64,000 nucleotides of DNA, taken from contig OZ059899.1 of the NCBI GenBank assembly GCA_964057225.1, positions 6,758,001 through 6,822,000 of the forward strand, written 5' to 3'. Source of the DNA: Auanema rhodensis. Lineage: Eukaryota; Animalia; Nematoda. Below, piece by piece: positions 1-24,762 of this stretch. Position 1 is the first letter of the stretch. Each line of letters starts with the position of its first letter. Both the position numbers and the translations under genes were made by a program. Under the pieces are notes generated by a model. It worked only from the letters and a program-made list of their open reading frames with translations, searched no databases and was not told where the DNA came from.

Positions 1-1516
1 ACTTATCCTCAAGAAGTGGTACAGAAGCAGAATAATAGAAAACTCTGAATACATAAATTTTTAAAATTGAAAAAAATAAAATATGCTTACTCATGGTCAT
101 ATTTAGAAGCAACAGTTTCCAAGTTTGAATACTTGGCCTTTCTGACGTGCATCATATGGTTAACTTCATTCATCAATGGCTCGATTTCATCCTGACGATA
201 TCCGGAGTACTTGTGCAAGACAGGGGTCCAGGTGGCGCTCTTAGATTTCATCTTAAGAGCCAAAAGGAAACAAGCAGCAGCAAGTCTAGACTCAGAAGTT
301 CCGACGAACTCGTAGAACAAAAGAGAAGTCTCAAGAATGTAACGAGCCAAAGTCAAAGTAGCCATATCAGCTCGGCAAGTCTTGAAAGTAATTAAAATAT
401 ATTTTGAATAGAAAATAAATATCATACTCTAGCATATCGTCTAACGAAGCTATAACTCAAAGGAGCACCAAGATCATAACCGACAGTTTTCAGTAGCTTC
501 ATTTCCATTCGAATAAGGTCTTCGCGAGTAAATGTCTCATCAGTAACATATAAGAAATCATCAATAAGAGGAGGGCTTCTTTCCTAAAAATTAAAAAGTA
601 ATTGACAAAAAGTAAATAATCAAACATCAAATTTGCTAGCAATGAACAAAGCAGCGCAAGCAATGAGCTGCAGTTCACTCTTGGGAGTGACAACTTCAGT
701 TTCCAAATACAAATCTACAAGTTTAACAGCAAGATACAGAGTTTCGTGGTTGAGTTCAAAGGTTTCTTGGATCTGAAAGATGAGATTAGAATTTAAAATA
801 ATTTTAAAAAATTGTCACCTCAACCATCCAGTCGCACAAAATAGCTCTATTTTCTTTTCTCACAAATTTTTGAGTTTTCATGTAGTCAGAAACTTTGAAT
901 GCTCTCTGAATGAAGCGTTCGTAAAAAAAGTCTGATTATGGTTTAATACTTCTCTGGCTCTTCCATATTTGAAGATATCCAGAGCGAACATGTGAACAGA
1001 AAATGGATCATTTGCACATTCACTGTCAAAATCGTAATTTGGGCACGGATCTTCAACGGGGATCTCAATAACTGAAGCTTCTCTGAAAATAACAAAATTA
1101 ACACGAAATATATCAAATTTACAAACTTGTTTTCGACTTCAAGAACAACACCAAGATCACCAGCGCTGTTAGATCTCTTGCCACTACGTTTGTTAGAAAT
1201 TTGCTTTTTCTCAGCATTAAGAATCTTCTTCGAAGAATCAATTAACACATTAGATATAGCCTTAAAACCGTATAGTAGAAAACTTTAAATAAAATTTAAA
1301 CTTACATTGCTCAAATCACATAAGGCAGCTCTTTTAGCTTTAGGTTCACCCTTCACGACGTTTTCGTCGACGACGGCAGGCTTACGGCCACGCTTAGCAA
1401 GAGCGTCGACTGAACATTAGAACGTAAACAAATCGTATGAATAAAATACCTGGTTTTGTTGGTAAAATCCCAGCCATGATATTATTAGCATTAGTACTGC
1501 GGCTTCTGAGCATCAT
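1..1516 (-). CDS. cyb-3: Cyclin B3, multi-exon; 3' end continues beyond the window start
   Basis: Starts MMLRSRST (ATG 1516). Destruction box RAALCDLSN at ~1306-1332. Cyclin box W..|IQETFELNHETLYLAVKLVDLYL. C-terminal TLTLARYILETSLLFYEFVGTSESRLAAACFLLA and SKYDHE|VFYYSASVPLL match C. elegans CYB-3 as recalled. Confidence 0.95.
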
Positions 1517-1893
1517 CTTCACAGACGTTTATACACACAAGTTATAGTACAGGAACAGATAAAGGTAAGTAAATGGAGCCCAAGGAAAGTTAGTAAGAAG
1601 CCCTGCAAGTTGAACATGAAAAAATAATACTGGTGTCTTAAAGGAACAATTAAAAAAACAGCCGCTCCACTCTGCAGAACTAGTATAAATGAAGTGAACA
1701 GACGCCACAGGGCGTCCAATCCCTCAGATACAGTACCACACGCAACATGATAGAAAACAGTAATATAAAATAATTCTGCTATTGTACTTTATCTGATTGC
1801 TCCTTAGGGCTTTCTAGATCAGTAAACAACCAGCTATTAGAAGAATGTTTGAATATAATGATAAGTTATGGTCATCTACTGTCAACAGGAGGC

Positions 1894-1946
1894 AATTCAA
1901 ATCCCGCCGACGCACGTTAGATGTGCAGGTTAGCGAGCGGCGCGAA
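1894..1946 (-). promoter_or_regulatory. E2F/CHR (DREAM-type) elements upstream of cyb-3
   Basis: Minus strand GGCGGGA-TTTGAA (1896-1908) and TTCGCGCC (1939-1946), ~400 bp upstream of the cyclin B3 ATG. These match the E2F (EFL-1) and CHR (LIN-54) motifs known from cell-cycle promoters. Confidence 0.6.
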
Positions 1947-2298
1947 TGCCAAAAATTTAAAGAGAAGTATCTTTTGACCTCTGTAGTCTGCTGTTTGTAT
2001 CTCAACCATTTTATTATAAAACATTTATTTCTTAACTTTAATAAGATGGAGATAGAGCAGAAGTCAAAGAAAATTATATAAATATATATATTTATGTAAA
2101 TGTAAATGTGTAAATGCATTTGACGTAATATGGATGAAACTATGAACTAATACATATTTTCCAATATTAATAAATTATGGGGCAAGATACAGCCAATTTC
2201 TAAGATATAGAGAAGTTCAATTATGAAAAAGTTAGATCAGAATGAATCTTATCACGAAAGTCAAAGAAAACGAGCGTTAACAGCTTTACACGAATACT

Positions 2299-2439
2299 GA
2301 CCGACCGAGCTACCCAAGCCGGAGTGAGAGACATGCCGGATGAACCGGCCACATGTGATCTGGGTGTGGTGTGGGACAGGTCATCTAGATTGGAAATAGC
2401 CTTTTGGTGTTTATTATGACCCTGGGTCGTTTTTTTTTT
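2299..2439 (+). ncRNA. Candidate ~130-nt structured Pol III-type RNA, family unknown
   Basis: GC-rich island. Terminal stem CGACC(2302)/GGTCG(2425) is followed directly by T10. Internal stems ACCCA/TGGGT, ACATG-CCGG..CCGG-CATGT and GGTCAT/ATGACC. A-box-like TACCCAAGCCGG at 2311. Confidence 0.45.
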
Positions 2440-2586
2440 GCTCATAGCATGTGCTAGAAGGAAGTTACGACTCGATATTATCGGTTAATGTCAAAAGAAT
2501 TGCTAAAAGCTACCTAAAAATGATTGGAATGAACAGGATTGATTTTTGTATTTGGTAAAAGGGCTCCAATAAAGTAGTGAAGTGAT

Positions 2587-5146
2587 TTAAACCCTTAAAC
2601 GGAATAGTGAAGACATCGTGACAGGAGCTGGTTTAATATTAGAATAATAGTCTAATAAAAACTCCTTAGTCAATGCATCGTCAGAATTAGTTTCAGAAGT
2701 ACAATTTGTACAAAGGAATGTAGCGGGAAATTGATATTTTGGATACATTGGATCTTCTGAGTCACGTCCTCTTAATCGAGTATTTACAATGTTATGGGCA
2801 CGCCACAGATACATGAATACATCTTCAGGCGTTTTCACCTAAAAATGTACTGTAAGTTGAAAAAAAAAAGATGATTACTTGAGTCTCCATTCGGAATGTA
2901 TTCGTTGTCATTTTCAAAAAATGATCCCTACAATGATTACATCCAAAGAAATTGCCAACCCAGTCTCTAATAGATTGCAATATTGGAAGAGGTTGGAAAT
3001 CAGCAGCTGAAAAAAAAAGAGAATTCTATTCATCGAAACAAATCTACCTTGCGTAGCTTTAGCTTTATTATAAGCAGTGACTGTTAGTGTGTGGAAAGTG
3101 GTCCATAATCCACAAGTGTATCCACGATACTGTGGAGTAGATCCTCTACAATGATCCCACTCAGCTGACAACGGGAATGGGTGTCCAGCAGCTTCCTAAG
3201 TTATATTTGTTTTTATACTTTACCTCTCATTTGAATTATACCTCTGCTGCAATAAACTCTTTTTGATAGTCATCAATCGAAATTTCGTTTTCTAGTCCTC
3301 GAGTTTCCAAGAAGTCACGCAATCGAGAAAATACTTGAACTGCACGATTTGTCCGATCCAAATGGGTCTAATTGGAAAAAATAAGTACATAGATTAAAAT
3401 ATTATTTTACTTGATTTAGATTCAAATATGCAACTGGAAGATTATCAATCAACAAATTAATGAAGGAATGTAATGCTGTTAAATTGGTGCCAGAAAGAGG
3501 AGCTCCTGTTCTGGCTGTTTCTCTGTATAATGCATACCGCATTGCTTTCAAAATATCAACTTCCGATACATAGTACAGTTTTGCACATCTAATGAAAAGT
3601 ATTTAAACAAAATGAATTGTCAACAAACTTTTCTGGATCCGCTTCGCAAGGATCTGTTTTGTTTTTTCGGCTGCTAAACTGAATTGTCTGAAGATCTGTG
3701 TCGGAGACTGAGATGAAGTTTTCAATTTCAGTCAGTAAAAGTCGTCTAAGTCTGTAAATCACATAATTTACAAAATAATTATTTAACTTCCGTTTACTCT
3801 ACAACAAGAACAGGATTGCGTTCTCCTTTTTTGAAAATAGCCAAGGAAGGAAAATCATTTATACTCAAAGCATCAGTTAATGCATGGTTTTTCAAGCATC
3901 GTCTGGCAATTAGAGTATCTTTATGCTTATGTAAATCGAGAAGTAACTAAAGTGAAATATTTCATGGTTTTATTTCCGAACAAATCATATCTAACCTGAG
4001 CTCCAGTTAAACTGGATTGATGATTTTCAAACACGATTGCCATATATTGAGCTGAAGCTGTTCGACCTTGCCATAAATCTCCATATGTCAGTATGCTGGA
4101 GATTTATAATAAGTAAAAAAAGTAGTATTAAAATGTGGAAGCAATCTATGTCTCTGTTAATTTTTCTACTGCATTTTTGACAGCAATATTTAAGCTTAGT
4201 ACATTATAAGCTACATCAATTTCTAACTACTCTTTCTTTTCTTATAATAAAACCTACTCATTTTCGTCCCAAAGTTTTAAGCTGAAATAAATTTACATTC
4301 TTGGAAAAAAATTTAATTTTTCAAAATGATTGATACGATTCGTTACTTACTCTCCGAGGAAGTCGAAAGTCGGCCAATCATCAAAACGGTTCACAGCATA
4401 ATCATCCATTACAAACTGAATTATAGATATAAATATAATTATGAATTTCTTAAATCAGTTTTCATACCTTCGTTAAATCATCTCTTAATTCAGCTATAGA
4501 TTGATGAGCTTTCATTTGAGTACTTGCCAGAGCTTCTGTTGAGTTTTTCGGGAAATACTAAACATACATATATGTACATATAATTGATTGTTACATCAAT
4601 TTGAATTTTATTATTATTTTTAGTTTCTCGACATATTGATCGGTTGTATACTACCAACAACAAACCTAAAGAGTCCACAAATGTTTTTCTTTTATGTCAT
4701 TGAAAGACGACACATAATACAAAAGACTAAAACAAGATACCTTCATATATGGGAAATATTGTACCCCATTTGCTCGACATGTCGCTTCATTCATGGAATC
4801 TGCGCAATTCATAGCAGCAAGACGAACTACATTTTGCCATCCACGAATATCATTAGCTAAAGCTTTGTAAATAGGAGCAAAGGCACGACAGTGTCCACAC
4901 CAATCCGAATAAAACTGTTATGTAAAATTATATTTTTATAGTTATAATACGTTTTTATACCTCGACCACATACGCAGGACAGTTCTCACCTTCACAAAAA
5001 ACTGTATCATTAAAGGTGGAAGCGTCAAGTTGAATAACGTAGTCTTCAGGTGAATACAGAGTTGGATTGCTTCCTTTAGGAATTATTCCATAATAGGCCT
5101 GTTCTCCAAAAGCATACCGAAACAAAAGTAAGAATATAGGCAACAT
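2587..5146 (-). CDS. Quiescin sulfhydryl oxidase (QSOX; thioredoxin + ERV/ALR domains), multi-exon
   Basis: Signal peptide MLPIFLLLFRYAFG after a TTTCAG acceptor. Thioredoxin motif FYSDWCGHCRAFAP. ERV motifs CRGSTPQYRGYTCGLWTTFH, FFGCNHCRDHF and LWRAHNIVNTRL..EDPMYPKYQFP..CTNC. Confidence 0.95.
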
Positions 5147-5929
5147 CTTGCGAAGCTGAAATATTATCATTAAAAGTACGCTACGCAACCACGAAAGTAC
5201 GAAAATTTATTGCGATGGGATCAAAATCTGGATAAGCTGACAAACAATTTGAGTGCCGAGAAGAAAATGTCAAAGTGACCGGATTCTGGACATATCCTAA
5301 TGATTTAGAAAAGTGTCAAGCCGGTCACAATAGATCAAATGTCAAATTGGATTAGAATAAACAAAGTTTGGAACTATAATTGAGGAACTGTTCAAGAAAA
5401 TAAGGAAAACTGAATTCGATGACTGATCCTTTAAAAATCCAGCTCAAGTGAGAAGGCTGACTTTTGTGACTTTATCATGTGAAGATGTTGAGCTAATAAT
5501 ATCTGGCAATCTATTTTTATTTTGCACATCTCAGTATTATTGATGATTGAACAAACAAATTAATTAAGCAACCATGAGCTAACAACGTTTCAAAATGTTT
5601 CTGACTCAAATAGAACAGCCGTGTTTTTTAAGATATCTATAGAACTCAGATAAACTTTTGGAAAAGCTTTGATGTCGTCCTTTTTTTCTGAGAAAAATGA
5701 ATATGATGGATGAATGAATGACAGAATTTTTTGCGATCGATGAGAATGAATTTTTAGAAATCATGTTTCAATTTTAAAAAATTCAGTTTCTTTCTTTTTA
5801 ATAAGGAAATGTTTCAATTTAGTCTCACATAAAATTCGTAGAATATGTAACAATATGATAGTTTTTTCATTACAGTTATGAGAATGAAAATACGAATATC
5901 TTCTGCTTTTTTTTGCTTAAGAACCACTT

Positions 5930-6777
5930 TTTTTTGTACGAGAACTGAACTTTGATAAGAGAGACGGATGTGTCCAAAGACAGAGGAATGAAAATAATAA
6001 ACTTAAAGTGCTCCGAAGAAATTGAGCTCATAGACAGTTGACATGAAAATTTGAATCCAATTTATAAACTATAATAGGAAATCGGAAAAGAAAATGTCTT
6101 CTAATGTAAACGTTAAAACATAACTTTGATCTTATAGAACTTCGAAAAACGACTGACTGAGGGAAGAATGACTATTACATGATGTGGTTCCAGGATTCTT
6201 TATTTTTGATTCAAAGGGTCAAGAACAAAATTAGATTTGAACTTTGCGAACACTCAGACAATGAATAGTTCTTACATAGAGGTGGACAAATAGTTCAAAC
6301 TTGGCTAGTGAAATTAAAACAAAATCAGAAATATATGAAGACGAACACTAAGAAAATACATAAAGTTCTTTCTAGTCAAACAACACAAGGTGTGAAAAAT
6401 TTAGAGTAAATCTGTAATGTTATTTGCAGATTTTTTTGAAAATAAAGCTTCCAATGACAATCCACAAATATAAATACAGAAGATGATCAGCGACAGAGAA
6501 AATTCCTAAACTGCACGTTGTCCGTGCAGAAACAAGTGGTAAATACATAGATTTGAAATAGATTAAGCCTGAGAGGACAAGCATAGAGCGATGACGAAGA
6601 AGACGAAGAGGAGGAGGAGCTTGACAACCAAGGAGATGAAGATGAAGGGTAGGAAGAAGATGATGACAGAGAAGAACAAGAAGAACGAGATGTAGTTCAA
6701 CTAAAAAGGGAATAAACGATCCTACCGAAAAGAAGAAAGCTTCGAGAATGATTATCGTCGGTTAGAAAAATGTTCAG
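5930..6777 (+). pseudogene. Possible decayed multi-exon gene with an acidic tract
   Basis: Purine-rich blocks bounded by intron-like signals (TTTGCAG ~6429, GTAAAT 6539, CAG/GTTAAG ~6778). Frame SDDEEDEEEEELDNQGDEDEG*EEDDDREEQEERD at ~6587-6692 is broken by one TAG. No continuous ORF. Confidence 0.3.
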
Positions 6778-9700
6778 GTTAAGTTTCGACTTTTGTCACG
6801 ATCTCTTTCAATGAGCAAAGCTAAGCTCTTCAGAAACCAATAGAAATAAAAAAATGTCTGGGTATCAAATAAATATTCGCGTTAAATGTTTTAAATTATT
6901 TACTATACCAACATTTTTGCATGCCATAGATATCGTCACATCTAAATACAATATTTACATCAAATTTAAAATTAGTTTAAACGTGAGCCTTATCTTTTGC
7001 TAAATTTATCTCTCAGCCTCACACGAATAATCTTCTCTCTTTCGTTCTTGGATTTTAAAAGAATTTCAAAAGATGATATAAGCTGCTGACCGGCTCTTTC
7101 TCGCTATTCTCAGCACCAGTTTTTTTTTGCTTCTTGTAGTGAAGTAGGTGTTGATCAGGAAAAAATATTTAAAACAAACAACTTGTGTAGCAGACATGTT
7201 CAAGCTGCATAACTATTCGCAATCATAACTGTTTTCTAGAATTGTCAAATGAATGGTGAAGAAATGAATTTAACTTCAAAAATACTAAGGCTCAAACATC
7301 ATATAGTGGACTGTCAAGATGTCGGTCAAACTATTCTTTTAGATAACAGCTATTTAAACCTTTATGCAGTTCAAAGAACCATCAAGTAAAATTCAGAGCA
7401 TCTGGTACAAAGGTAGACTGGATTGAAGACTATTTGTGTTGAGACTGACCCTTTGACCAAACAAGGTAAGTTTCTCCGCTTCGACATCTAGCTCTCGATA
7501 CCGCTCACCTTTCTTCAAACTTTTATATTGTTTTCTTTTCATTCCTACTCTCTGATCATTTCTTTCTCTTTCTCGTTATCGAGTTAGGAATTTGCTCTAT
7601 TCTTATAAGGCAAAAAGAACTTAAAGTATATATTATTGATCAACGAATGAAAAAGAAAGATTGAAAGGGCATGTCTACTTGAGATGAAACAAGTAGAAGA
7701 AGAAATGAAAAGATTCATAATGTACGCATATATAAAAGGATGTAGTCCGAAGTTTTTTCATGGCCGAGAGGTTGAAATGTAACTTCAAAATAAAAGCGGT
7801 GCATAAAGTTCGGCTCGAATACTTCGCATTTTTCTAGTTCATTTGCTAAGTTTGAAAAAGGTTTTGAATTATTGAACAACATCAATCAACATATAACAAT
7901 GAGGATGTGAATGTCAGAAAGTTGAAAGAAATATGAACAGGAATGAACAATTTCCAATTACTCAACTTTCCTTTTTTTCTGGACACTGAAAAGAAAAATT
8001 AACTCGACGAATATGATCTAGACATGACATTACATGGATCTTAGTAGGCCAAATGAAGAACATCATATGGCTTAAATAGAAATAGGTTTAGTGAAGTCGT
8101 CGATGACGAGATGTTTCAAAACTAAGACGTGAGCCCAGAAACAAACAAACGTTATGTGATGAAAGGGAACGTCTTGGTTGATGGTTAAGAAAAAAGCAAA
8201 AGAAGATGGTCAACTTCTTTCTCTCAATATGTTGAATAAGCACCCACCGAAATAAAGATTATACCATATAAGAAAGAGACCGGTGGGGGATAAGGATAAA
8301 GCAACTAGTCGACATAAAGGCAACTACCACAAATAACAATAAAACAACTTTGTAAATTCAAGTGAAAATCATGTGGACACATAAATCGGTTGATCCATAA
8401 GTAAACGTAACGCGGAACAATTATGATATTTAAGAAACATTCCATATTATTTCACCTCAATACTTATCTCATAATACCATGAACTAGTTAATGATATTGT
8501 AAAGCAACAATTGTAGAAAACAAACCGATATTTTCTTATTTATGATCTCAATGTTTTCACTCAGATACATTAAACCATAGATGTGTACATGACATTATGT
8601 GTTTTAATACTATTGTCACAAGTTTCTTTTTTGTGTGTTGTCTCATATAAAAAAATTCTTAAATAAAAAAAACTGCATGTGTTACTTCCAAGGTATCAAA
8701 ATGTTTTTCTTATGTTTAACAACGTTGGTTTTTAAGGTTGTTAATAATGACTATTGGTAAATAAAAATATTTGTTTTTCAAGACCAACCCTTCATTCCAA
8801 TCATACCAATGCAAAAATGGCAATCGGAAATTTCTTTTTTCATCATCTTCTCAGATGTCTTCACATATTTGTGCTAGTTTGTTTTTCTAATGAAAAAACA
8901 CATGACAAGAGTTTAACAGGCTCGGATAGCAACAGCTTTGTTGTATACAACTCTTATCATTTCTGAGTTTTTCACTCTACTATTAACTTTTACTCTAAAA
9001 AAAATTCAAAAACTAAAAAAATGAACTCTAATTATCTTATAAATTAGCTATTTTTTAAATTAAAGCCTTTGATAAATTATCATGATTTCGCATATATATC
9101 GTTATTTTATTTATTTCTTTCCTCCAAATCTTTTTAGTTTTCTATTATATTTCTAACACTAATAGCATTTTATGACTATTATATATAGATATATAATAGT
9201 TTTACAGTTTTTTCTTTTAAACTTTTATTAATGCAAAACAATTGCTGTTATTCGAATTATCTGGTTTTTAATAGTATTAATTAAATTACTCTAATACAAT
9301 CAAATAATCAATTTTCTCATAAACTTTCATAGGTTCTCTCCTTTTTTGTGATTAATAAGGAACAATATAAACTTGATACCTAATATTTACATACTTAGGT
9401 TTTTAATATATTATTTCCAAACAGTCATATACCAGTTTAAAATTATTAATTCGTTTTTAGTTCACAACAATTTCATAAATTATCAAAATATCAGAATGAC
9501 TCTTGACTCGTACGTGAAAAGCATTTTTTATCTAATACATGATTCTTCTTTATTTTGTTCATATTAGTCTTTGAAACAATTTAATTCATTAAAATATTTT
9601 ATTTCTTTTGAATAATTTTCTGAGTTCACCACGGAGGTAATAACCATAACTGATTAAAGTCGGAAGATAGGAATATTTAATTTGAACAATATAAAGAACA

Positions 9701-10273
9701 TTATAAAAATATTCGATGTAATTAAAAACATAGTAACCCGTAACTTCAGAAGTAATAGTTGCATTTGTGACCCTTTCTTTGTGCTGCATGTTATCACAAT
9801 GGCGAATATTTTCGATTACTGTGTAATTATGTTTCCAATGTATATGGCATTGCTTCTGTTATATTTAGTGGGTACATGATACACCGTTGAAACAATATAT
9901 TTTTCTTCCTTTTTAAGTAAATTTATTAATATTTCTATCTAGACTTTCAATATCTTAATTCAACTAGACTTCTTAAGACCTTTATTTATGTAGTTGCGAG
10001 TCTTGTATAATTACTGGAAATTAATAAAAACTATTTATTGAATGTTAAAATAATCTTTCACATAAACAAAAACAAAAATATTAAGGAAAGACGTTAAAAC
10101 AAATTACACTGTTGCTGCGTATACCACACAAAACTTTTCACGTACAGTTTAAGCGTCATTCTGTGCAGGGTGTCTGCTATCTAAAGCATATATTTAAGCT
10201 TCAAACCTATAAATAATATATTAGTTTTAACTATATTCAGAGTTTGTGTATATAATGCCCCATAATCGAATAA

Positions 10274-12012
10274 ATGTTTTTACGGAATAAAAAACTTCCG
10301 TCATACATTGAGGGTACTCAAGGGAGATATGTTCGACGTGCGAGTCCGCCGAAAGTACCCTCTGTGTCGTGTAAGTTTGATGTTTTATCAATTGAAATCA
10401 GTTTATTGTTTAGCTCATAATGTTGTAAAACAGTCTCCTCAAAGCAGCTCTTCGAAAGATTCACCATCCAAGTCGGGCTCTATTAGTCATAATCACCTGG
10501 GACATCAAAATGATGTTGATAACGGAAATGACTCTGTAGTATCTCTCTTACAGGTGAGCAATATAATTTTGATTAGATAATTAGCTTGGTAAAGCATTGA
10601 AACTGTGCAACGTGTCATACTTTTTTTTTATTTTTTAACTCATTTTATCTTCATATTTGTAACATTCCTGTATTTAAGGCCTATTCTGGAAACGAGCCAC
10701 CTTCATATAATTCATGTGTTAATAATAATTTAGGATCAACTTCTCAACTTCATGTATAATTAATTTAATCGTTTTATTTTTTCAAATAGTTTTTTTTATA
10801 GACTCATCATTCCCATATGCCTGACTATGCGAGCGGGAATCGTAGTCCTCAGCCCGGAGCTCTATCTTCTCATAGTTTCAAGTTAGTATTTATTTTAAAA
10901 AATAATATTTTTTTGTATTAGTGATCCTCGTCGTGAGCATGCACATCGAAAACCTCTAACTACATCTCATAGTATTGGTAATGTTGAATCATATTTGGAT
11001 AACTATGAACCTAGGTATCTTTAAATATTTATGTAATATTTTAATGGACTTTTTTCTTTTTTTAGTAGTAGTACATACATCGTTCCCCAGCAGCGGTTTG
11101 TTTCTTTGCAAAACTTACCTAGTAAAAATATAGGATCTTCTATTATAGGTTAGAACTCTTTTTATTTATGAATTGTATTTGTTTATGGATTTTGGTACAA
11201 TTATGTACATGAATATTAAATTTAGGTGACGACTGTTTAGTTTCGGGTACTCCACAACAAGATGACTTACCGCTACCGCCCAACTGGACAATCGAAGTTA
11301 CACCTGAAGGATTGAGGTACAAACTCAAACATAAAGCTTTTTTAATTATTGAAAGTATTTTGTAGATATTATGTTGATCATAATAATTGCCGAACGCATT
11401 GGATACACCCATTGGCTAAAGAGAGTTTACCACCACGGTGGAGGAAAATATTTCACGAAAAAGATGGGGTTATTTATTACAAGTGAGACTTTCTCATATA
11501 CTATAAATTATTCAAACATTTTCAGTGAGGTTGAGATGAGATCCCAAGTAGAACATCCTGGAATAGCTGCACCAATTAACAGAACTGAATCAATGTTGGT
11601 AGCAAGTCATCGAGCTGAAAGTGCTGTTGCTAATCTTAATATTATCGACTCTGAAGGTTTTTTTTTGATAATTTCTTGAGAGTTTCTTGTATGCTGTGTT
11701 TACAGAAGTTCCCGGGTGGCTACTCTTATATTCGCAAGCAGATTCGAAATTTGATCATCTGTTAGAAGTATAGTTGTTTTCACTTTTTTTGTGTCATTCT
11801 TATATTGCAGTGGGATCTTTTTCATACTAGCCAGTTAGAAGAATTTGAATATATGATGCTAAAATTGTATAAACAGGATGTAATTGAAACTGTTAGGAGG
11901 TATACCTGTTGTGAATTTGAATTAATTTTTTTTTCTATTTAGGTACGAAAGAATGCGAACAATGCTGAATAGAGAAATCGTAAGGCGAACTCAGCCACAT
12001 CCGAGGGAATAA
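10274..12012 (+). CDS. sav-1: Salvador homologue (tandem WW + SARAH; Hippo pathway scaffold), multi-exon
   Basis: N-terminus MFLRNKK..EGTQGRYVRRASP resembles the Salvador N-terminal motif. WW domains LPLPPNWTIEVTPEGLRYYVDHNNCRTHWIHP and LPPRWRKIFHEKDGVIYYN..EHP. SARAH region EVPGWLLLYSQADSKFDHLLEWDLFHTSQLEEFEYMMLKLYKQDV..YERMR. Confidence 0.92.
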
Positions 12013-12420
12013 TGGACAGTTTTATTTTGTACATATTTTTACGAGCTTAATTTTGACCGACATAGTGACAACTCTTACTTTGCAATATTTTTCCTCATAC
12101 TTTATCAACAGCTCAAAGTTAATTTTAGACGCTTCAGATCTTGCCTTGATTTATTGTGATGATAGTGCCTCAATATGTAATAGGACTCATAAAGAGAATT
12201 TCGTAAGCTCTAATATCTGTGCACACTTGAAATTAGAAAAACAATTTATTTCGATTTAGGCACAAGGTATTTTTCTCTAGAACGTATCCTACTGTTAATG
12301 TGTATGTTGAAGATTATGTTTTTGAAAAGACCAAAATCTTCATGATCCACAGATACAAATATCAGTAGGAGTATTTATTTTTTGATATGTTCCTGCTGAG
12401 ATGTTAAATTGGCTATACAC

Positions 12421-14480
12421 TCAAAACATAAGATGTGTCTTGCTCTTTACAGAAGTGATTTTAATTCCTGATCCGCTTTTTTGAACTCCAAGTTTTCGCC
12501 GAACTATATACCATTCTATGACTAAGGCAAGAACAACCAATACAAAACAAAGAAGAAAGACGTGTCTCGCCCACCTAAGATTGTTTTACATTAAAAAAAG
12601 AGTTTTGGAAGCTTTTTACTTTGGTACTGAATGATCTCTCACTTCCCCATTTAGCTCGTGCATTTCTTTAACTGCATACCCAAGGTCGTCTACTAGATTT
12701 TCCATCATAGTTTGTAGAGGCCAACCTGTAAATGCAAAATAGGCTTTTTAAGATGTATTTTCGCATTTGACCGAGGAGGTTTTAAAAGGTAGTGCAAAAC
12801 ATTATCTAAACATTTAAACGAACCTTGAACAAGAGCATTGGTTGCCTCGCTTTGTATGTTACTCAGCACGAATTTCAGTCGATTTTCACCTGAAATGGGT
12901 TTTTATAAAATCTCGACAAGGAAGTTGCTTGTTTGTAGGTATTGGTATTGGGAACTCGTCGAAAGTGGAATATTTCATTGTTTTTTGTTTCCTTACCCGA
13001 ATGTATTCGTACATAAGGAATTTTTCGGGCATCGTTAACCAATCCATCTAAGACAATGAGGACAAGAACATTAGGTTGAGTGCACTTTTCGTCAAGTCCG
13101 AACCATCGTTCATATAATTTCCACGCGTAAACCTAGAACATTAAAAAATGAGACGAAAAAAGTTTAGTAATAAACATTTGTAACGACATTTCAAGTTTAG
13201 TTACAGAACTATTCAGTGTGGATCCCTTTAAGTATAAATGTATATAGTTGAAATTATGATCACAATAGACAAAAAAAAGCATTGTAAGGGGAGGGGATAA
13301 GCCCATTTTAGGTATGCATGAAAACGATTCCATATGCACCAAGACACTGTCGCCAATCTGAAAGATTGCTGACAAAGCTCATTCTCAACGTCTTTTGACA
13401 AATCTTTCGCATTCAAATATTTTTACGTGTAAATCTGAATAGAACATTCGCAATACTGAAAATGGAAGAGGCTAGGAGAGGAAAAAAACAAAAAAATAAG
13501 AATCTCGCTGGAGCGTGTGAGATCATGAATCGTTCTTTCCTCAAATGCAAAAAAAAGATGAAATGTACGAAAATTAGTATACTATGCATAGAATCCGGTT
13601 GTAAAAACAGCTAATTCAGAGTCTGATGACCAATGAAAATTTATATACTTTCAAAAAAAAAAGATTTTTATTAGAATTGTTGAAAAAAAATAGTAAACGT
13701 ACTTTCATGAAGGTTTTTACGCTGGTTACAAATCCGGAAACAATCTCGTTATCTATTAAATTGCATTCATTCTCAAAAAGGCATTTATATTTATGATCAT
13801 TATACACAGTATCAGTGGATGTTGGAGCTTCCAATTGTTTGACTGAAAATGTTTATTTTTCAAAAAACTCTATTTGATGAAAAAAACAAAACAAACCCAA
13901 AATAATGGCTAAAGTAGAATTACCCTGATGGGTCAAAAAAGGACGGTACCTAAATCAAACTATTGACCAAACAATAGAAGCAATTATGTTTAAAACCTTT
14001 CATAAGTTGTTTCTATTCCTGTTGTACTTGAATGAACCAATTGATGATGTAAATCACAAAGAAAGGGTAAATGTGGGAGAGCCATGCATTCTTGCTTGAA
14101 CTGAAAATATTATGTAAGTATTTACTTCTTTAATTTAGATTATCTCAATTTTATTTTTTTTTTGCATTTTTTTCAATGAATCTTTGTTTTGTCTTCAAAA
14201 TCCCGTAATCATCATATAGCGTATTTCGAGCATACAAGGAACTCAAACTGGAAAATGTTCCGGCGAAATCGAATTCAGGAATTCTATTAGGGCGACAAAA
14301 TCAGCCAAGAAGTCCTGCACTCAGGTTTAGATAATAAATGTTCATATTCTTTTGAAGCTATATAAGGCGAAAAGGCCTAAACTTGATTGACCTGCCAGGC
14401 GGAATCCCGTACACTTGCATAGACGCCTCGAAGATGTAGATAATTTGCGCTATTATGAGATATTTAATACACACAAATAG
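12421..14480 (-). CDS. MOLO-1-like TPM-domain single-pass membrane protein; 5' end unresolved
   Basis: Spliced exons give FKQECMALPHLPFLCDLHHQL, STLAIILVKQL and FMKVYAWKLYERWFGLDEKCTQPNVLVLIV (TPM-type pattern). Then TM segment WARHVFLLCFVLVVLALVIEWYIV and a basic tail ending KTHLMF*. Confidence 0.65.
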
Positions 14481-17400
14481 TCCTCAAATCGCGTAATATT
14501 TTATTATAATTGTAATTTTTCCTTATATCATGTGTAAAACGTTTTAGTTACATATGTAATCGTCTTTGAAATCGATGGGCACGGAAGTTTTCATAAAAAA
14601 AAATAGTGATCCGTGACCAACCCGGAAATTCCACATCCATCATCGTAAGCGACTACTACACCGCTTTTAAACCAAATTCGAAGTTCAGAAACAGACAATG
14701 GGCACATATTCATATTATATTACTGAGTTTAAATTATCAGATCTATAAATATCTATTGAGATTTTTGTGAGGTGTCTTATTTTTATTTCAATTTTCTACT
14801 CGGCTACCTCCTAATTTTGCTCAATACTGACTTTTTTCAAAAGGATAAGATATGAAAAGATTTTTTGCTCAACTGCAGAAGCTAATAAAACAAATACATT
14901 TCTAGCACATTTGCAATCGAAGCTTTGAATTCTCGCAGTTGATGATACAAAATCCAATGCTTTCTACCCCGATGTGAAATAGTTTTAGTCATAAGAAAGA
15001 TAGAATGAAAGGATCTTCGCAGAAACCCTGAGTCAAAACGAGCAAATTCCCTAGTGTGTCTTTGTTTCGCCTCAAGCTGTCCTTCATGTATGATATGCTA
15101 TGGCTCCAACAATAGCACCAAAAAGCATTAGGAACGTCATTTTGAACTTAAGGAAGCGCAAGAATAATTAATATTTCCCATCAACTTAACAGGTCATATT
15201 TAATGAAATGTTATTTAAAAAGTAAAACTAAAGATGAACATGTTTAAAATTTGAGAAAGAAATGTTCCAACTTATATCAGTGCAAAACCGAACTGAGATG
15301 GAACCACTTAGCCGTCTCAGTTTTATTCGAACATTGTTAAAAGTTCAATTTGCCTTTTCTTCGAATATGGTGGATTTCATGTTGTTACAGAGTATTGACT
15401 ATAGAAAAGGATGAGCGATCTTTCTACTCATGAATACGAAAAAAAATTTAGTTTAAAAGCATAAAGGTTATGTTTAGCGAAAGAAATGAACTTGAATGAA
15501 ATGTTCATCATCGTTATTCTATGCAAGTAAAGCATGTTTCTACATTTATGTAATTCTTTTTTTAACATTTAATGATATAACTAGCGGGTTAGCTGCCAGG
15601 ATGCTCACTCTTACGCTCTTCCTCTCTCCAGACATCCTACATTCATGCTTCCATTTTTGCTATCGCTCTCTCTGTTTCTCTCTCAATCGTCCTATAACAC
15701 GCTCTACCTCTTCTTAAATGATTAGCGGACTTGAAATTATAAAGGAACATTAGCTTTACGTGACCTTTGACGAAAGCCTTTCATTTTCCTTTTAATTATT
15801 TTTGTCTAGTCTCTCACATGAGGAATGTTAGTTGTAAGAGAAAAATGAATATTGGCTTTTAGTGCTTGATATAAGCCTTTGAGATAAATGTGGAGCTCAA
15901 GACTTCTGGTGAGAAAACATAATAGTGCTTTTTCTTTGTTTTTCATTGCTATCTCTGTTTTCCTGTGTGATTTTTAAGCAATCATCTTTTAAGAAGGCTT
16001 CCTCTTAACCTATTTTTTAAAGAGGAGCTCAAAAACGAGGAGCCAATTGGATTCTTTTTAACGTCTTCTATTTCTTTTTGCTAAACTACTTTGGTTTGTA
16101 TCAGTTTTTGTCCATTTAGTTTCGATGGAGATGAATGACATTAAGGAAAAGCATGTCTTAGACGACCATCTTTTCTATTTTTTTATTCTCTCCATACCCT
16201 GGTTTTTTGTTCGTAGGTTCATTTATTTTCGCCAAAAATAGGAAGAAAACGATTTTTACTTTTTTTTTCACTCTCCTTCAGTCATTTTTAAACAAAAAGA
16301 AAAAAGTGGTTAAAATAGAAGAAAAAGATGATTCAAAACCCTATTTCGAAGGTGGGGCTAGAATTTGTTCCCAGCGCTAAACTGAACATAAATGGAAGGC
16401 GTTAGTAAACCCCTTCGAAATACATGAACAGAGAAATGGAAAACAGGGTTCGTTGTCATATTTTATTGAAGGAAAAGTCGAGTGTTTTTGGCATATTTAA
16501 AGGGTTAGTAGTTGGTCCTATTCCAAGAATAATCTGCATTTTACATGAAACACGTGGAAATCCCTGTGCTAGCTGAGCACCATCAAACTCATTGCAATAT
16601 ATGCCGAGGACAAGAAGCTGCTTAATAATTCATAATTCATTTCGTTTCTATGTAATCAATGGCATGACAGGAGGGAAAGTAGGAAGATGCTTTGAATTGA
16701 ATATCATCGAGAAATTGAATGTGCTCAAGTGGAAGAGAATCAACTGATGCTATATTCTTTCACTGCCAATATTCTCTTCAACATCTTAGAATATTTAAAC
16801 AAAAGTTATTATCTATCATAACATGTGAAGCACAACATTTCATATTTACAATATAATATGTTTTACATCGTGAAAAATAGACAAAAGACTTATATAAAAA
16901 AATATTCTACTTGTTATTTTTGTTTTCAAGATTAAATGACATTCTTAATTGAAACTCCTATTCTTTTTTTCCAATTAGAAAGCCAGTCCACAAAACTAAT
17001 TTCGAAGTCGCAATATCCAAGAGACAAAGTTATTAAGAAGTTTCAAAATGTTATATTTTCATTTGAAAATCTTGAAATTGAATTTGCTATTTCAATGTTG
17101 TTGCTTAAGTGGCCTTCTGAGAGAATTGTTTAAAAAAAAACGTAAATATTTTGCTACAAATAAAAAAAAAAGAATAAGCTTCGTTCAGTTTCAATTTAGT
17201 AACGGAACATACACCCTCATTTTTTGAAGTTTTTAACTTTCATATTATATAGAAGACGTAATGAAGCAGAGAGCGCATAATTAGATTGAATAGACAAAGA
17301 ATTCAAATATTTAGTCTGATTATATTGTTTAATTCTTCATACTACTCATAAATTTTTTTTTGTTAGTTCATTAAGTATTTCATTTTTTGAATTCATAATC

Positions 17401-19109
17401 AGTTTCTTTCTTAAATAGAGTTTGAACGATGGGAAAATTACATGACATTCTTCCCACAACCCAAAGTGAAAATTGCTGTAGTTTATATAATTTTTCAGTT
17501 GAAGAATATACATATTTCTGCCTATATTAACAAAACCTTGATGTGTGATCAAATTTCAAAGTTGGCTATTAAAAGAGCTTGTCCAAATATGGAGCCAGGC
17601 CAGTAGGATTAAGATCAGGACGAAAATGAAAAAAGAGCAAAGTCGAGTCTAGTGGACATGGTGGCCTGTGCTCCCTGGAGAAACTGAAACGGGTGGTTGT
17701 GAAAACGGCATGTCATGAGCTCATTCAATAATTAACTTTGTATGAGTTTCGTTTTAACGCTCATCCATGGTTTTGACAAGCTATTTTATTAGCTAACCTA
17801 TTAGCTAATGAAAGATTACGGCAACAAATACTCCAATACTAGGTTCAACTGGAAAATTCAATCAGAAGGAGAATATGGAAGGGTATAAGGTCGATATAGA
17901 GTCATGGCTGAATAAGAATAAAAGAAAACAATGCACAAGAATCAGATGAAAAGAAATGCGATTCGAGCAAAGGAATAGAGGCAGAAATTCAATGAGGTTT
18001 CGAGTTTTAAAAACCTTTGAGTATTAATACCACAAAAGATATAATTGACATACATTGTTACCTGAGAGAACGCTAATAAGAATATAGTAACTGCTTTTAA
18101 TTTCACTATTAGTTTATCGATATTATGTATTGTATTATGATTCTGTTAGGTTTTTTTTCAAGGCTATTTTGTTTTGTGTCGTGTCTGTTTTTTAGTATAA
18201 AAAATGAAAAGCAAAATAGAGCTGAACAGGAAGGCGATGAAGATGTCAAAAATGCAGTTTTCCCCGCTCTGCTTTTTCTCTCAGAGTATCGTTGCTGGTG
18301 ACGAAAACGAGTCAACTCGTCATCCATGCTTCACCAACTATGTTTGAGCTGCAAATTTTGGGTTTCAATCATATTTGGGGAGATTTAATAATAGAGAGCT
18401 GATGACAAGTATGTAAACTATGATTTCCTTATTCCTATATCTCTAAGAATCTTATCTGATTTATATTCCTATTTCGTAAGTATTCTAATGAAATTCGAGC
18501 ATTTCCATTTCTTTGAATGTTTGTTTCAATTTCGTTTCCTTGTCAATAGCAAGCATCAAAGACAAATCCATATTTTAATTCAATAAGCTTCATTATTGAT
18601 GAATACTTATGATCAAAGCAAATTGGTTGATGAAGTCAGTAATATAAGGAATAGAATACCGAATAAGAATAGGACCTTGTAGTGATAATAGAAAATGAAT
18701 AAAAGTTCCCAAATATGAAAAGAGCTATGTTAGAAGGCTAATTTGGAATTCTGCCAATTTCTAAGAAGACGGCATAAAGTGCCATTTACTAGATGTTAGA
18801 GTGCATACACTTTATTAATGCTTACATCAATCTTATATTATTTGAACTGAACTGGTTTGAGCTCTTTTGAATATTGAGTATTTTGGTCCCCCATCATGCT
18901 ATAGCTCTTACTATATCCCAGGGGGTATTCAGGTTCTCCAGTCAGCAAACGTCTTTACAAGCTTTTGTCTGCTAAGAAACAAAAAGTGTTTCCATTACCA
19001 TTCAGCTTAATTAAGTTATCATAGAACTATAGAGCTAATAGTTATATTTCGTCATAAAATAACAAGAAAAAATAAAGATATTTGAATAAAATAAAGTTAA
19101 AAAATCAAA

Positions 19110-19330
19110 AACTCACAATTGCAGCTGGAGAATATACGGGAGAAGGAAAATCACAAGGACTATAGATAGGAGGTATTACTATCTGACCAGCTTGAGTAGC
19201 TTTGAATATCCAACTCAAAATGAAAAAATACTGGACCATATCTTTTCTGGTCAAATATACAAATGAGGGTTTAGCAACATGAATCAGATCATTTGGAGAA
19301 ATATCATGCTATATTCCCCTTTTGGAAGTA
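19110..19330 (+). mobile_element. Possible decayed non-LTR retrotransposon AP-endonuclease fragment
   Basis: TIAAGEY (19115), FEYPTQNEKILDHIFS (19201-19248) and ESDH (19281) appear in the order of the APE motifs GDFN / PT..LD.IF / SDH. They lie in three different frames with stops. Confidence 0.3.
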
Positions 19331-20195
19331 TGCGAAGGAGGAATGAGAGCGGCTTCAGCTGGCTGCTGCATAATAATTGGCCCCGCCCAATTCTGTCTGC
19401 GGCAAGCGGCTTCCGCAGGGTAAGAGACGTCCAGTTCATCTCGAGAAGCCAAGGCAACCAAATGTATCTCAAGTCACTATGTTTCCTTCATCTGTCAGAA
19501 GGTTTTAAAACACAAATTACAAGCAATGGTTGAGATGGCTACTAGAGACAGAAAACTTTGGAAAAACAAGATGAAATTGATATGTAACTTTCGTGCCATA
19601 TTATTATTTGGATATTTGTATAGAGCGGTTGCGTTCCATTAGAGCTTTAGCACAGAAATTGAATAAAAAAATGTCAACAACAGTAAATTGAATATTTTAT
19701 AATTCAGAATTCAGATTATAAGATCATTACATTAATTTACCCATTATAAGAAGATGAGATCAGCATATAATGATTAAATTGGCAACTCTATAACAAAAAA
19801 AAGACAATTAAACCCGTTGTATTGACGGCTAATATATAATATATAATATATAGACATAAATATTATATAACGATATATGTATATGAAAAATCGACATTTT
19901 AAAATCAATATATGTAGAGACTTAAAAATATACCAAGAAGTTAAAAATGTACAACATTATAAATAGAAAATCAAAAGAAAAAGAAAAAGAGAAATATAAT
20001 ATACATGAGATATGTCGTATTAGCATTCTCATAGAGCTTTTTAATTTTCTAAATTTCATGACAACTAATGTGAACAGAAAACATGGAACATTTGCAACAC
20101 AACTAAAGCATAAACCTGAGATCATGAATATATAAACTGAGACTCATCGAGCATGTATACCGTTTATACCTGCTTTATTCAGTACAAGAAAAATG

Positions 20196-22905
20196 CTAGC
20201 AATCCTCATCATCATTCGACATGCATCTGGATATTTGACGTCCATTATTAACAATAACTGTATTACGTGGTGTTCCAGTTGTTTCATATATTGATGTTGA
20301 CAGGTAGAATGCATTGCAAGCGAATTGAGAAAAATATAGTATTTGAGATATGGCTAAAAAAATCAATATTAACAAAAAATATGTGAAACCATTGTTTTGT
20401 TATAGTTTTTATCATGAAATTTGGCGCTTTTTTCGTGATTCTGATCGAAAGTTATTCGTGACATCAACGTTCTTCAGTTGTTCTCAATTTTTGAAACAAA
20501 GAAATGGATGATTTTGAGGTTATTATTATAAATATTTTTTATTTGTGATTATTTAATATTTAGAGTAGAATTAAAGATATTCTTAGCAAAGCTGAAATAG
20601 CCAGCAATACAGCGTATGATAGGCACGATACAACTCAGGGTTCACCTGCTGCTTTAAATGTTTATATTATTAATATTTCGTTTTATTTATAAATTTGTTT
20701 AGGTGTATGAGCCAGAGAAAATAAGAAATAGATTTTCGGAGAACTTGGAAAGATTGGAAAACGGTATGTCTTTCTAATATTTTTTTATAGTTTTTTTTTA
20801 TATAAAGTTTTGGAAATAATTAACTCTGTCATTAAATTTTTATAATGTTGTCCATATATTTTTAAGATTGGAGACGAAATCGTTTTGATGATTGTTTAGA
20901 AAATGATCAATGGGATGTAAAAGAAAAAATTCTCATGGTTCGTTTTTTATATTTTTTGTAATTGTGTTTTTGGATTCCAGCAGAGACTTGAGCAAGAACG
21001 AGAAATTTTCGAACTACAAAAACTCCACCTTCAACTGAAAATTCAAAAAACAAGACTAGAACTGAAAAGCCTAGAAAAAGAATGTGATTCTGAAGAGAAT
21101 GTTGCTCGCAAAACGCCGTACGTGACTATTAACCAATACAGATATGATCCTAATTCATAATTATAATACTTACGTTCTAATATTGGAATAAGATCATTGG
21201 AACCAGCATTTTCATCTATAGTAAGCCATGCACGCAAAATATGAGATGGTAAATTGAGAACCAAGTTTAAGACCGAAATAACAATTGATCTCATCACCAT
21301 AGCAGCTTTTTTCTTAACAAACTTCTGTCGCTTCTTAGTTCTTCCCTGTAAAGTATGATCCTTATTGTTGTGTTCAAGCAAATATTAAAAACTGACTTGA
21401 CTTGTAACAGATGAAATGGACATAACTAAAGCCATATTATTTCTCAACTCTACGGTATCGGCATCTGTCATTGTGGATGAACGGGATGCTCTGAATATAT
21501 TTTTTGTTTTATCACATTCTTAAACATATTTTAACCTCCGAAAATTGTTTGGTAAGCTGATAGCATATCGTCTTTCATACAGGGAAGTATCAAGCACCGT
21601 GAATGGATTATAACAATGAAAAAGTACAATTCCATCAAAGAATATTCGCAACACAGAAGGTATAGCATAAAACATTGTGATATCCATTAGATGTGCTAAC
21701 TAAAACCAAAAATATAAGTAATATATGTTCAATATATTTAATTTTTATTTTAGCATTATTTGTGAAATACCTTTTTGTTATGCTCCGATATGGATGGGTC
21801 CTCTGTACATATTCTGCCATCGTCAGAATATATTACTAAATACAAGATCCAGACTTCGAACGCGCAACATGACACAGCGAGCGTCCTTAAATGCATTGGG
21901 TTGAATTAATTTTTTTTTCAAATTGAATTTTTGTTGTGAAAAATGAAAAAAAAATTACTTGAGAGCATTACGAGGCTGTCTCCATATAGTCCTATATTTT
22001 ATAGGATGAAATACAGCAGTATATCGAAGAACTGCTAAGGCTAACCATGACCAAACACTAAACGCTGAGGTTGTGTGCATAAGATAAATGTCTATCTGAA
22101 ACGGAATGTTGACATGGCTTATGCAATGTTTTTCTTTGATTCAAGTTTAGAACTTGACCTTCCTATTACTGAGAAACATTTTATTTTCCATTTCTACTAC
22201 ACCAACAGAACCGCTTTGCTTTGCTTTTGCTTGCAAAAGATAATTTATGTAAATTCAACGAGCTGCATGATAATGGTATATGAAGGCTAGTATGAAAATA
22301 AAATGAATCCTGATTTCTTAATATTCGAAAACTTTTTTTTATGCTTCAAAGCTCTTTGTTCACTAAATTAAGCATTTTTTTTCTAAATAATATATGTGTT
22401 TATTCTCAATGTCTTATCTTCAATATAAAGACATCCTCCTCTTTTATAAGAAATTATTTAATATAACTGGGACTTTTCTTCAAAGATCAAAGATTATTAT
22501 GGGAAACTTACTTTACATATTACATCCAAAATAGTGTTATTCATAAAACTTTTATTAATTGAATGAAAAACGGCTTGAACTAGTTGCGCCCATAGTGTAA
22601 TACTGTCACTGACGCTCATGCAAGCTAATGGTAGAGCAGAAGAAGTTTCAAACCGAACAGTATTTTTTCTGAAAAAAAAAATTTAATTTATTTTTCAAAG
22701 CTTTGTGTGGAAGTAAATTTTCTATTTTCTGCAATACTAATAGACAAATAAAGTATTTATTTCGTTTCATCATGATACCTCGCTATTCGTATTAACCTCC
22801 ATAGTACATATCCATTCAAAAGAATACCAGCTATTGGTACAATGATGTAAAGGGTAAAATATGCTGTATGAATATTCATTCCAATGACATTTCTTCTAAA
22901 GATAC
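20196..22905 (-). CDS. Divergent rhodopsin-family 7TM GPCR (peptide-receptor-like), multi-exon; likely ATG 22879, further 5' exons possible
   Basis: TM1 YFTLYIIVPIAGILLNGYVL. TM2 LACMSVSDSITLW. C-K then TM3 IYLMHTTSAFSVWSWLALAVLRYTAVFHP. TM5 DITMFYAIPS. TM6 ISVLNLVLNLPSHIL. TM7 ISQILYFSQFACNAFYL. Stop after MSNDDEDC. Confidence 0.88.
20504..21160 (+). CDS. Nested antisense 5-exon gene encoding a ~140-aa coiled-coil protein, inside the last GPCR intron
   Basis: Exons 20504-20518, 20564-20659, 20703-20763, 20867-20937 and 20981-21160 join through GT-AG introns in one frame: MDDFE SRIKDILSKAEIAS..QRLEQEREIFELQKLHLQLKIQKTRLELKSLEKEC..YRYDPNS*. TCTTCAG acceptor at 20471-20477 upstream of the ATG. 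Confidence 0.8.
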
Positions 22906-24762
22906 CTAAAAATAAAAGAAACATTTAAAATTTCTATATCATAATACATACATACATAAGATATTGTTAAGAATATTATGAACAAATAAAATTATTTAAT
23001 AACTTATAAAGTTAAAATCATTTTTAAAAATATAATGCATGAGATATTGATGAAATTGTTTCTGAGTACTAATAGCTTAAAGTAACAATTATATAAAAGC
23101 TATTGTGCATCCATATGTGCATGTAAATGATACAGATATACAAGAGATAAAAAGTGATATTAGCCAACCATAAATGAAAAAAATGTGTTGAAAATTAAAA
23201 AAATAGTTAGAAACAGAAGAAATAAAAAAGAAAAAAGGAATAAAAAGCTTGATCTTAATTTCAATTATTTTGTTTTTCAGATAAATGCTGTCTTACACAT
23301 TGAACTGACAATAGCTGGCGAAGTCAAAAAAAGTTCAGAAGAATAAATAAATGAAAACATCTGACGAAGAAAAAATAAATTTCAATTTTTGTAATAATTT
23401 TTTGGAATGTTTTCTGTAACTATATCAATGTTTAAAAACAAAACAGAATTATTTCGTGACAAACTAGTGAAATTGGTCTTTGTTTTATCTATTCGAAAAA
23501 AAAAGAAAGAATTTACTACATAGAGCGTTAATTTCAGTATTATAATAAATAAATATAACAGTGAAAAAATTGAAAGTTGTATGGCTTGTTAAGAGATGCC
23601 TTATTCAGATTTTGAGAAGCAAAAGATATAATTTTGCTTTGACTAAACTAAACATCATGAAATCGACATGTGATATCTTCACAAAAGAATGCTTAATAGT
23701 ATATAAAAAAAAGAAACCAATTAAAAGTTGACTACAATGGTTTAATATATCATTTTGGAAAAAAAAACGATACATTTCAGAACTTTCGATTTCCTGACAG
23801 TATTGATTTGTAAAACACAATCAAGTTATTAATAAAAGATGAAATGAAAACAGAACATAATATAAATAGTAATAATAATTATATATTATTTAATAAAATA
23901 AAAAAATAATAATGTTTCAATAGCTATGTTCTTATGAACAAATTGGTCAAAATGTTTACGTTACAACCAAATTAATGACTTGGATTAACATCTGTATAAA
24001 ACTAACAAAGAATATAAATTCAAAAGAACAAAAGGATAAATTACATGCCATAAAGATAATAAAGCTTTGACTCATGAAATAGAGAAGTTGATTGAATTGT
24101 GAGCATCAAATAAAGTTATTATAATATTTAATTGCTAAAGATTGTTGATTGTAACTATATTGTTACTATATTTATACCAAATTCTCGGAACGTACTCATT
24201 TCATATATATATAGAAATAGTGAAAAATAATTGTTTTTATTTTGAACAGACACAAACGTTTGTGATCAAAAAAAATCGAAGAGATTAGCGCTAATCTATC
24301 TGTCAATGATTTATTGCAAAAGTTCAGAATAGAATAAAACTACGAATACATTAACCTCAGTACATCTTTGAATTTCGAAGCAACAACACACTTAAATACA
24401 AACATTGAATTTAGAGGAATAACCTTTAAAAAAATAAATTTGAATTTATTATAATATAAAAATCAATTCAAACGTTTTCTATCACGAGAGTTTTAAGAAA
24501 AAGGGCAAAAGAAAGATAATATAGGATAGTAGTAGAAAGTAGGATATACTATTAAAATTATTATTCTGCCCAATAAACTGTGTTCTGATGATATTTAACA
24601 TATAATTGAAAGAAGGTACTAATTTGTTTCATATCATTTAATGAAGAAAAAAGAACTACAGAAAAAGAATATAATATTTAAATATAAAAATACAAAACAA
24701 CACATTTCGAAGATATTTCCAATTAAAGAAATCGTAACAATAGCTGCCAATTGTACTGTGTA

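Follow-up and report, generated by a model that had tools for sequence, protein, structure and literature searches.

A spliced antisense gene, very probably protein-coding, nested in the last intron of a putative class A GPCR gene of a clade V nematode

Introduction

Opposite-strand nested genes are well documented in nematodes. In Caenorhabditis elegans 567 opposite-strand nested coding gene pairs have been described, with ceh-10 inside polq-1 as one example (PMC12274878). In the same species a nested gene can alter the transcription of its host, inducing a short host transcript (PMC12274878).

Here we describe a nested gene in a window of 64,000 nt (the whole stretch of DNA that was analysed, to which all coordinates refer unless another locus is named). 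The window very probably harbors a real protein-coding gene with a transcript of its own, which seems to be absent from the protein collections searched and lies antisense in the last intron of a putative class A GPCR gene of a clade V (rhabditine) nematode. As in other nematode opposite-strand pairs, the host splices the nested gene out together with the intron. Unlike strict nested pairs, the gene fills most of a small intron of only 820 nt, and it is not strictly contained because its 3'UTR almost certainly runs into the neighboring host exon. In contrast to ceh-10/polq-1, the nesting was not seen in the other nematodes examined. The locus also resembles convergent cis-natural antisense pairs, in that the mature transcripts of the two strands very probably have at least 30 nt in common (21174-21203); here, however, it is an internal coding exon of the partner (the exon of transmembrane segment 6, TM6) that is overlapped, and not its 3'UTR. 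Like nematode orphan genes, the nested gene is small, acidic, of low complexity and expressed, and it has no detectable relative in very large protein collections. Five exons and a well-formed frame set it apart from typical young de novo genes, and its orphan status derives from piecewise searches. What is less common here is that the geometry forces an antisense overlap onto an internal coding exon of the host, and that no relative can be recognized.

Results

The host gene is located on the minus strand and comprises eight exons that encode a product of 380 residues. Its last intron (20354-21173) measures 820 nt and is bounded by a minus-strand GTAAGT donor and a TTTTTAG acceptor, while the other introns range from 45 to 416 nt. 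On the plus strand of this intron, five exons and four GT-AG introns (45, 43, 103 and 43 nt) join into an ORF of 140 codons (20504-21160). The coding part of exon 1 (20504-20518) consists of five codons and opens with the first ATG of the transcript. It is followed by intron 1 (20519-20563), exon 2 with 32 codons (20564-20659), intron 2 (20660-20702), exon 3 with 61 nt (20703-20763), intron 3 (20764-20866), exon 4 with 71 nt (20867-20937), intron 4 (20938-20980) and the coding part of exon 5 (20981-21160), which holds 59 codons and the stop codon TAA at 21158-21160. Only 13 nt separate this stop from the host exon that begins at 21174. Intron 4 ends at the upstream one of a tandem pair of CAG acceptors (CAGCAG at 20978-20983), and a candidate acceptor 5' of the ATG, TTCAG, ends at 20477. 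The GC content is 0.35 in the nested exons, 0.16 in the nested introns and 0.36 in the host exons. A mechanical ORF list of the window contains exon 3 alone, and the omission of exons 1, 2, 4 and 5 is attributed to the lack of an in-frame start codon in those exons. The first-pass annotation had proposed this architecture, i.e. the 820-nt host intron, the five exons with their intron lengths, an ORF of about 140 amino acids, the acceptor 5' of the ATG, the tandem acceptor and the short distance between stop and host exon. The sequence agrees with it exactly on each of these points, the upstream acceptor being present as a sequence motif.

RNA evidence was drawn from four public runs of a single study (here X1 to X4) in the form of assembled contigs, with the strand of a transcript deduced from the splice-site dinucleotides of the contigs and not from stranded reads. 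These runs contain about 40% of the words sampled from the stretch. Contigs in both genes skip introns with canonical ends and are therefore transcripts. Every one of the four predicted nested junctions was recovered exactly: 20518/20564 in two runs (X2 and X4), 20659/20703 and 20763/20867 in all four runs each, and 20937/20981 in three runs (X2, X3 and X4), all with GT..AG ends. The splice across the whole host intron (20353 to 21174) is contained in contigs of three of the four runs and shows CT..AC ends on the plus strand, so that nested and host junctions lie on opposite strands and the nested coding sequence falls entirely within one host intron. At the tandem CAGCAG the upstream AG is the only one used in the contigs. 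The contigs of the nested gene are separate, beginning at 20439 and 20454 without any joint to upstream exons. The contigs thus bear out what was initially suggested from the sequence, i.e. that the last intron of the GPCR gene holds an antisense gene that is transcribed and spliced on its own.

Two contigs show a different structure. One from X1 (20923-21150) is colinear across nested intron 4 and represents a retained intron, pre-mRNA or genomic DNA present as a trace in the library. Another, found in all four runs, matches the window rightwards from 21030, while leftwards at least 255 nt are absent from the 64-kb window. Neither strand shows splice-site dinucleotides (GT/AG) at the 21030 break, and an in-frame stop occurs in the foreign part; this contig could reflect a word common to another transcript, a segment duplicated elsewhere or an assembly chimera.

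The nested contigs start at 20454 (X2) and 20439 (X4), i.e. within about 100 nt of the last host exon, and the nested mRNA begins there or farther upstream. The 5'UTR, as far as it is reached by contigs, spans 20439-20503 and includes an in-frame TGA at 20459-20461 as well as the unconfirmed TTCAG acceptor. Left of the first nested junction the contigs hold 78 letters (X4) and 63 letters (X2), all colinear with the genome. Since they read through the TTCAG acceptor in this way, they lend no support to a spliced leader at 20478, bearing in mind that leader tips of 22 nt are easily lost in assembly. Just 5' of the contig starts, 84 nt upstream of the ATG, lies a perfect E2F-type site, TTTGGCGC (20420-20427, plus strand), which hints at cell-cycle or germline expression. 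We regard this site as a lead only, because the pattern TTTSSCGC occurs five times on both strands of the 64 kb versus 2.7 expected.

No plus-strand gene lies directly upstream of the nested gene; the upstream neighbors are on the minus strand. These neighbors, together with the in-frame stop before the ATG, dismiss the idea of a downstream gene of an operon or of additional exons of an upstream plus-strand gene. Likewise, a retrocopy is ruled out by the four introns, and a role of the host intron as carrier of a non-coding RNA is not backed by any Rfam match in the scanned region (19000-24000), which includes nested intron 3. On the minus strand, about 680 nt downstream of the 3' end of the GPCR gene, a highly expressed gene (contig depth 17-103) has its first exon at 19117-19332. 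This exon starts with a sequence resembling a signal peptide and terminates at a GTGAGT donor (19116).

At the opposite end, the X2 contig is colinear from 20980 to 21203 at a depth of 60, compared to 8-10 for the host contigs, and at 21203 its assembly graph joins the spliced host path. In X3 the contig continues to 21345, the far boundary of the host exon, and its additional stretch may have been merged with host reads. The first hexamer past the nested stop that resembles a poly(A) signal is AATAAG at 21187. The minimum 3'UTR accordingly covers 21161-21203, of which 21174-21203 is antisense to the host TM6 exon; contigs thus enter this exon by at least 30 nt, although they are strand-blind and could merge reads of both genes. 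Given the 13-nt gap, the position of the first hexamer and the colinearity of contigs to at least 21203, an antisense overlap of the nested 3'UTR with the TM6 exon is near-certain, as had been anticipated, and the nested transcription unit is not wholly contained in the intron.

The host product is, judging from its sequence, a putative class A GPCR. Its TM3 exon alone matches 7tm_1 with E=1.7e-4 and 21.6 bits, the cut-off of 30.5 being one for the whole protein, and includes the motif LRY. In the orthologue of Teladorsagia circumcincta, 7tm_1 is found in the upstream half, and this orthologue is annotated as a G-protein coupled receptor. The TM6 exon (21174-21345, minus strand) is defined by junctions and translation and is 72% and 71% identical to fragments of Cooperia oncophora and T. 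circumcincta, respectively. The last coding exon (20196-20353, minus strand) encodes TM7 and the C-tail, ends with a stop at 20196-20198, is followed by a 3'UTR to about 20009 and shares about 80% identity with T. circumcincta. The second longest host intron (22096-22511, 416 nt, minus strand) is devoid of transcript contigs in all four runs, so that nothing points to a second nested gene there.

Orthologous loci were retrieved with the TM6 exon from C. oncophora and T. circumcincta, and a second search found an orthologous host fragment in Dictyocaulus viviparus. All three strongylids share an intron at the identical codon position (after ...LE/VE, GAAC|GT). This intron measures 4543 nt in T. 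circumcincta (including a 712-nt gap of N) and at least 2.1 kb in C. oncophora, where the contig ends within it. In D. viviparus it has 389 nt without gaps and is hence shorter than the nested coding sequence of 423 nt. A local tblastn of the full 140-aa nested protein against 52 kb of these orthologous loci returned nothing below E=1, whereas host exons in the same databases gave E=1e-10 to 1e-26. On this comparison the host receptor and its intron are old, but the nested gene is either absent from these strongylids or diverged past recognition. The nesting itself was thus not detected in any of the three relatives; the idea of an orphan or fast-evolving gene fits a protein that is undetectable in the orthologous intron and its flanks.

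The predicted nested protein (140 residues, 16.9 kDa, pI 5.1) has a high content of E, L, R, D and K. Neither a signal peptide nor a hydrophobic segment was recognized by eye. AlphaFold2 folds the exon 5 piece into a single helix over piece residues 2-43 (about 83-124 of the protein); the first 30 residues reach a pLDDT of about 97, and confidence is low for the last 16, in line with a disordered tail. In the heptad register a=81, seven of eleven a/d positions are occupied by L, I, V, M or F, and the d positions read L84-F91-L98-T105-L112; the leucine heptad run noted earlier is therefore a fair description. We infer that the product is acidic, soluble and mostly helical. Its C-terminal helix (about residues 81-116) may form a short coiled coil or zipper for oligomerization or docking. 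With short leucine-zipper and coiled-coil proteins it shares one long, confidently predicted helix in which about 4.5 heptads have hydrophobic a/d positions; unlike them, it has no basic region or named domain and carries charged residues at two a positions (R88, K95).

Searches of protein collections were run exon by exon, the longest piece being 59 aa long and of low complexity. Among exons 2 to 5, each compared separately with Pfam, exons 2 to 4 gave no match, and exon 5 produced two matches, both below the cut-off (DUF1374 with 14 bits versus 21; Pro-NT_NN with 13.2 bits versus 25.3). An exhaustive HMMER search of exon 5 against 1.84 billion protein representatives yielded no match at E<=0.001, so that the nested protein itself and close relatives of exon 5 are absent from that collection. 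A word-index protein search with exon 5, which is blind to proteins longer than 103 aa, gave no candidate. The ESM Atlas, queried with exons 5 and 2, returned nothing, PDB sequences gave coiled-coil or low-complexity matches at chance level only, and metagenomes scanned for exon 5 and for the TM6 exon of the host gave no match. A tblastn search for a paralogue of the nested gene within the window was negative as well. These results accord with the initial impression that no family is recognizable, although a distant known family could be missed by searches with single exons.

Discussion

The decisive support for the nested gene comes from RNA and not from the sequence alone. When the 820-nt intron was shuffled and up to four GT-AG introns (40-110 nt) could be chosen freely, the best ORFs reached 69-144 aa; by itself, the nested ORF is therefore not clearly beyond chance. 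This outcome, together with the lack of a homologue showing purifying selection, speaks for a reading in which the GPCR locus produces a spliced antisense long non-coding RNA whose ORF is fortuitous. Once the junctions are fixed by RNA, the picture changes substantially. The longest ORF of the mature 516-nt transcript has 140 codons, and none of 2000 dinucleotide shuffles of this transcript attained that length (mean 34, maximum 127 codons); on its antisense strand the longest ORF is 9. In addition, the ORF opens at the first ATG of the contig (20504) with an in-frame TGA upstream (20459-20461), it extends over all five exons and occupies 423 of at least 516 nt, the GC content of the exons is coding-like and the product is predicted as a confident helix. 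We therefore consider a non-coding transcript highly improbable. The orphan status of the protein, in turn, might be an artifact of exon-by-exon searching if the protein belonged to a conserved and named family of small coiled-coil subunits. Pieces of 20-59 residues from small coiled-coil proteins are hard to match, a threshold of E<=0.001 against 1.84 billion sequences demands a high score from a 59-aa query, the word search could see no protein above 103 aa, and the five exons argue against a very young gene. On the other hand, annotated strongylid proteomes are part of the collection in which exon 5 found no match, no piece had a Pfam match above noise at E<=10, and the full-length protein found nothing at the orthologous loci. 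Membership in such a family is unlikely in our view, albeit a good deal less so than the non-coding reading.

Our preferred explanation remains a protein-coding gene of ordinary kind. It would be transcribed by Pol II from a compact promoter of its own, situated in the roughly 100-150 nt between the last host exon and the ATG and containing the E2F-like site. Transcription would proceed towards the host TM6 exon, and the host removes the whole nested gene along with its intron. The small helical product would act as an oligomerizing or adaptor subunit rather than as an enzyme, and the gene would be lineage-restricted or evolving fast. Cross-talk with the host, which the first-pass annotation had raised as mutual regulation by transcriptional collision or by dsRNA/endo-siRNA, may conceivably arise from colliding polymerases or from the antisense overlap at the 3' end. 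A working sense-antisense module, in which the nested 3'UTR base-pairs with the GPCR mRNA at its TM6 exon or in which converging polymerases collide, such that one gene lowers or reshapes the other, draws on the overlap forced by geometry (with contigs colinear to at least 21203) and on the C. elegans precedent of a nested gene altering host transcription (PMC12274878). Both transcripts are, however, present in all four bulk samples. Contig depth, which reflects expression poorly, lies between about 3.4 and 60 for the nested gene and between about 2.7 and 10 for the host, i.e. it varies about 17-fold and within about 3-fold, respectively, with no reciprocal trend. The nesting is, moreover, not conserved in Dictyocaulus. 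Taken together, such a module is improbable. Even more speculative, and in our estimation slightly less probable still, is a scenario in which a lineage-specific coiled-coil gene has come to occupy the last intron of a neuropeptide-type GPCR, with its 3'UTR antisense to the TM6 exon. Transcribed in dividing or germline cells, perhaps under E2F control, it would silence or truncate the receptor in these cells by means of dsRNA, endo-siRNA or polymerase collision. If true, it would constitute a newly evolved on-off switch for the receptor.

Nested arrangements are common in nematodes, and the present case is consequently sound but ordinary and changes little on its own. It adds what is very probably a real and expressed gene that simple ORF tracks overlook and that is not found in the public protein collections searched, and it corrects the picture of this GPCR locus. 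Since the nested 3'UTR must, by all appearances, run antisense to one of the receptor's coding exons, this locus offers a compact natural case for testing interference of nested genes with their hosts.

Two peculiarities concern existing gene models of the orthologous receptor. The annotation of T. circumcincta (locus 588-14831) divides the orthologous GPCR into two models of 167 aa and 94 aa. The C. oncophora model reads past the donor of the TM6 exon into the intron, and its product therefore ends in intron-derived residues.
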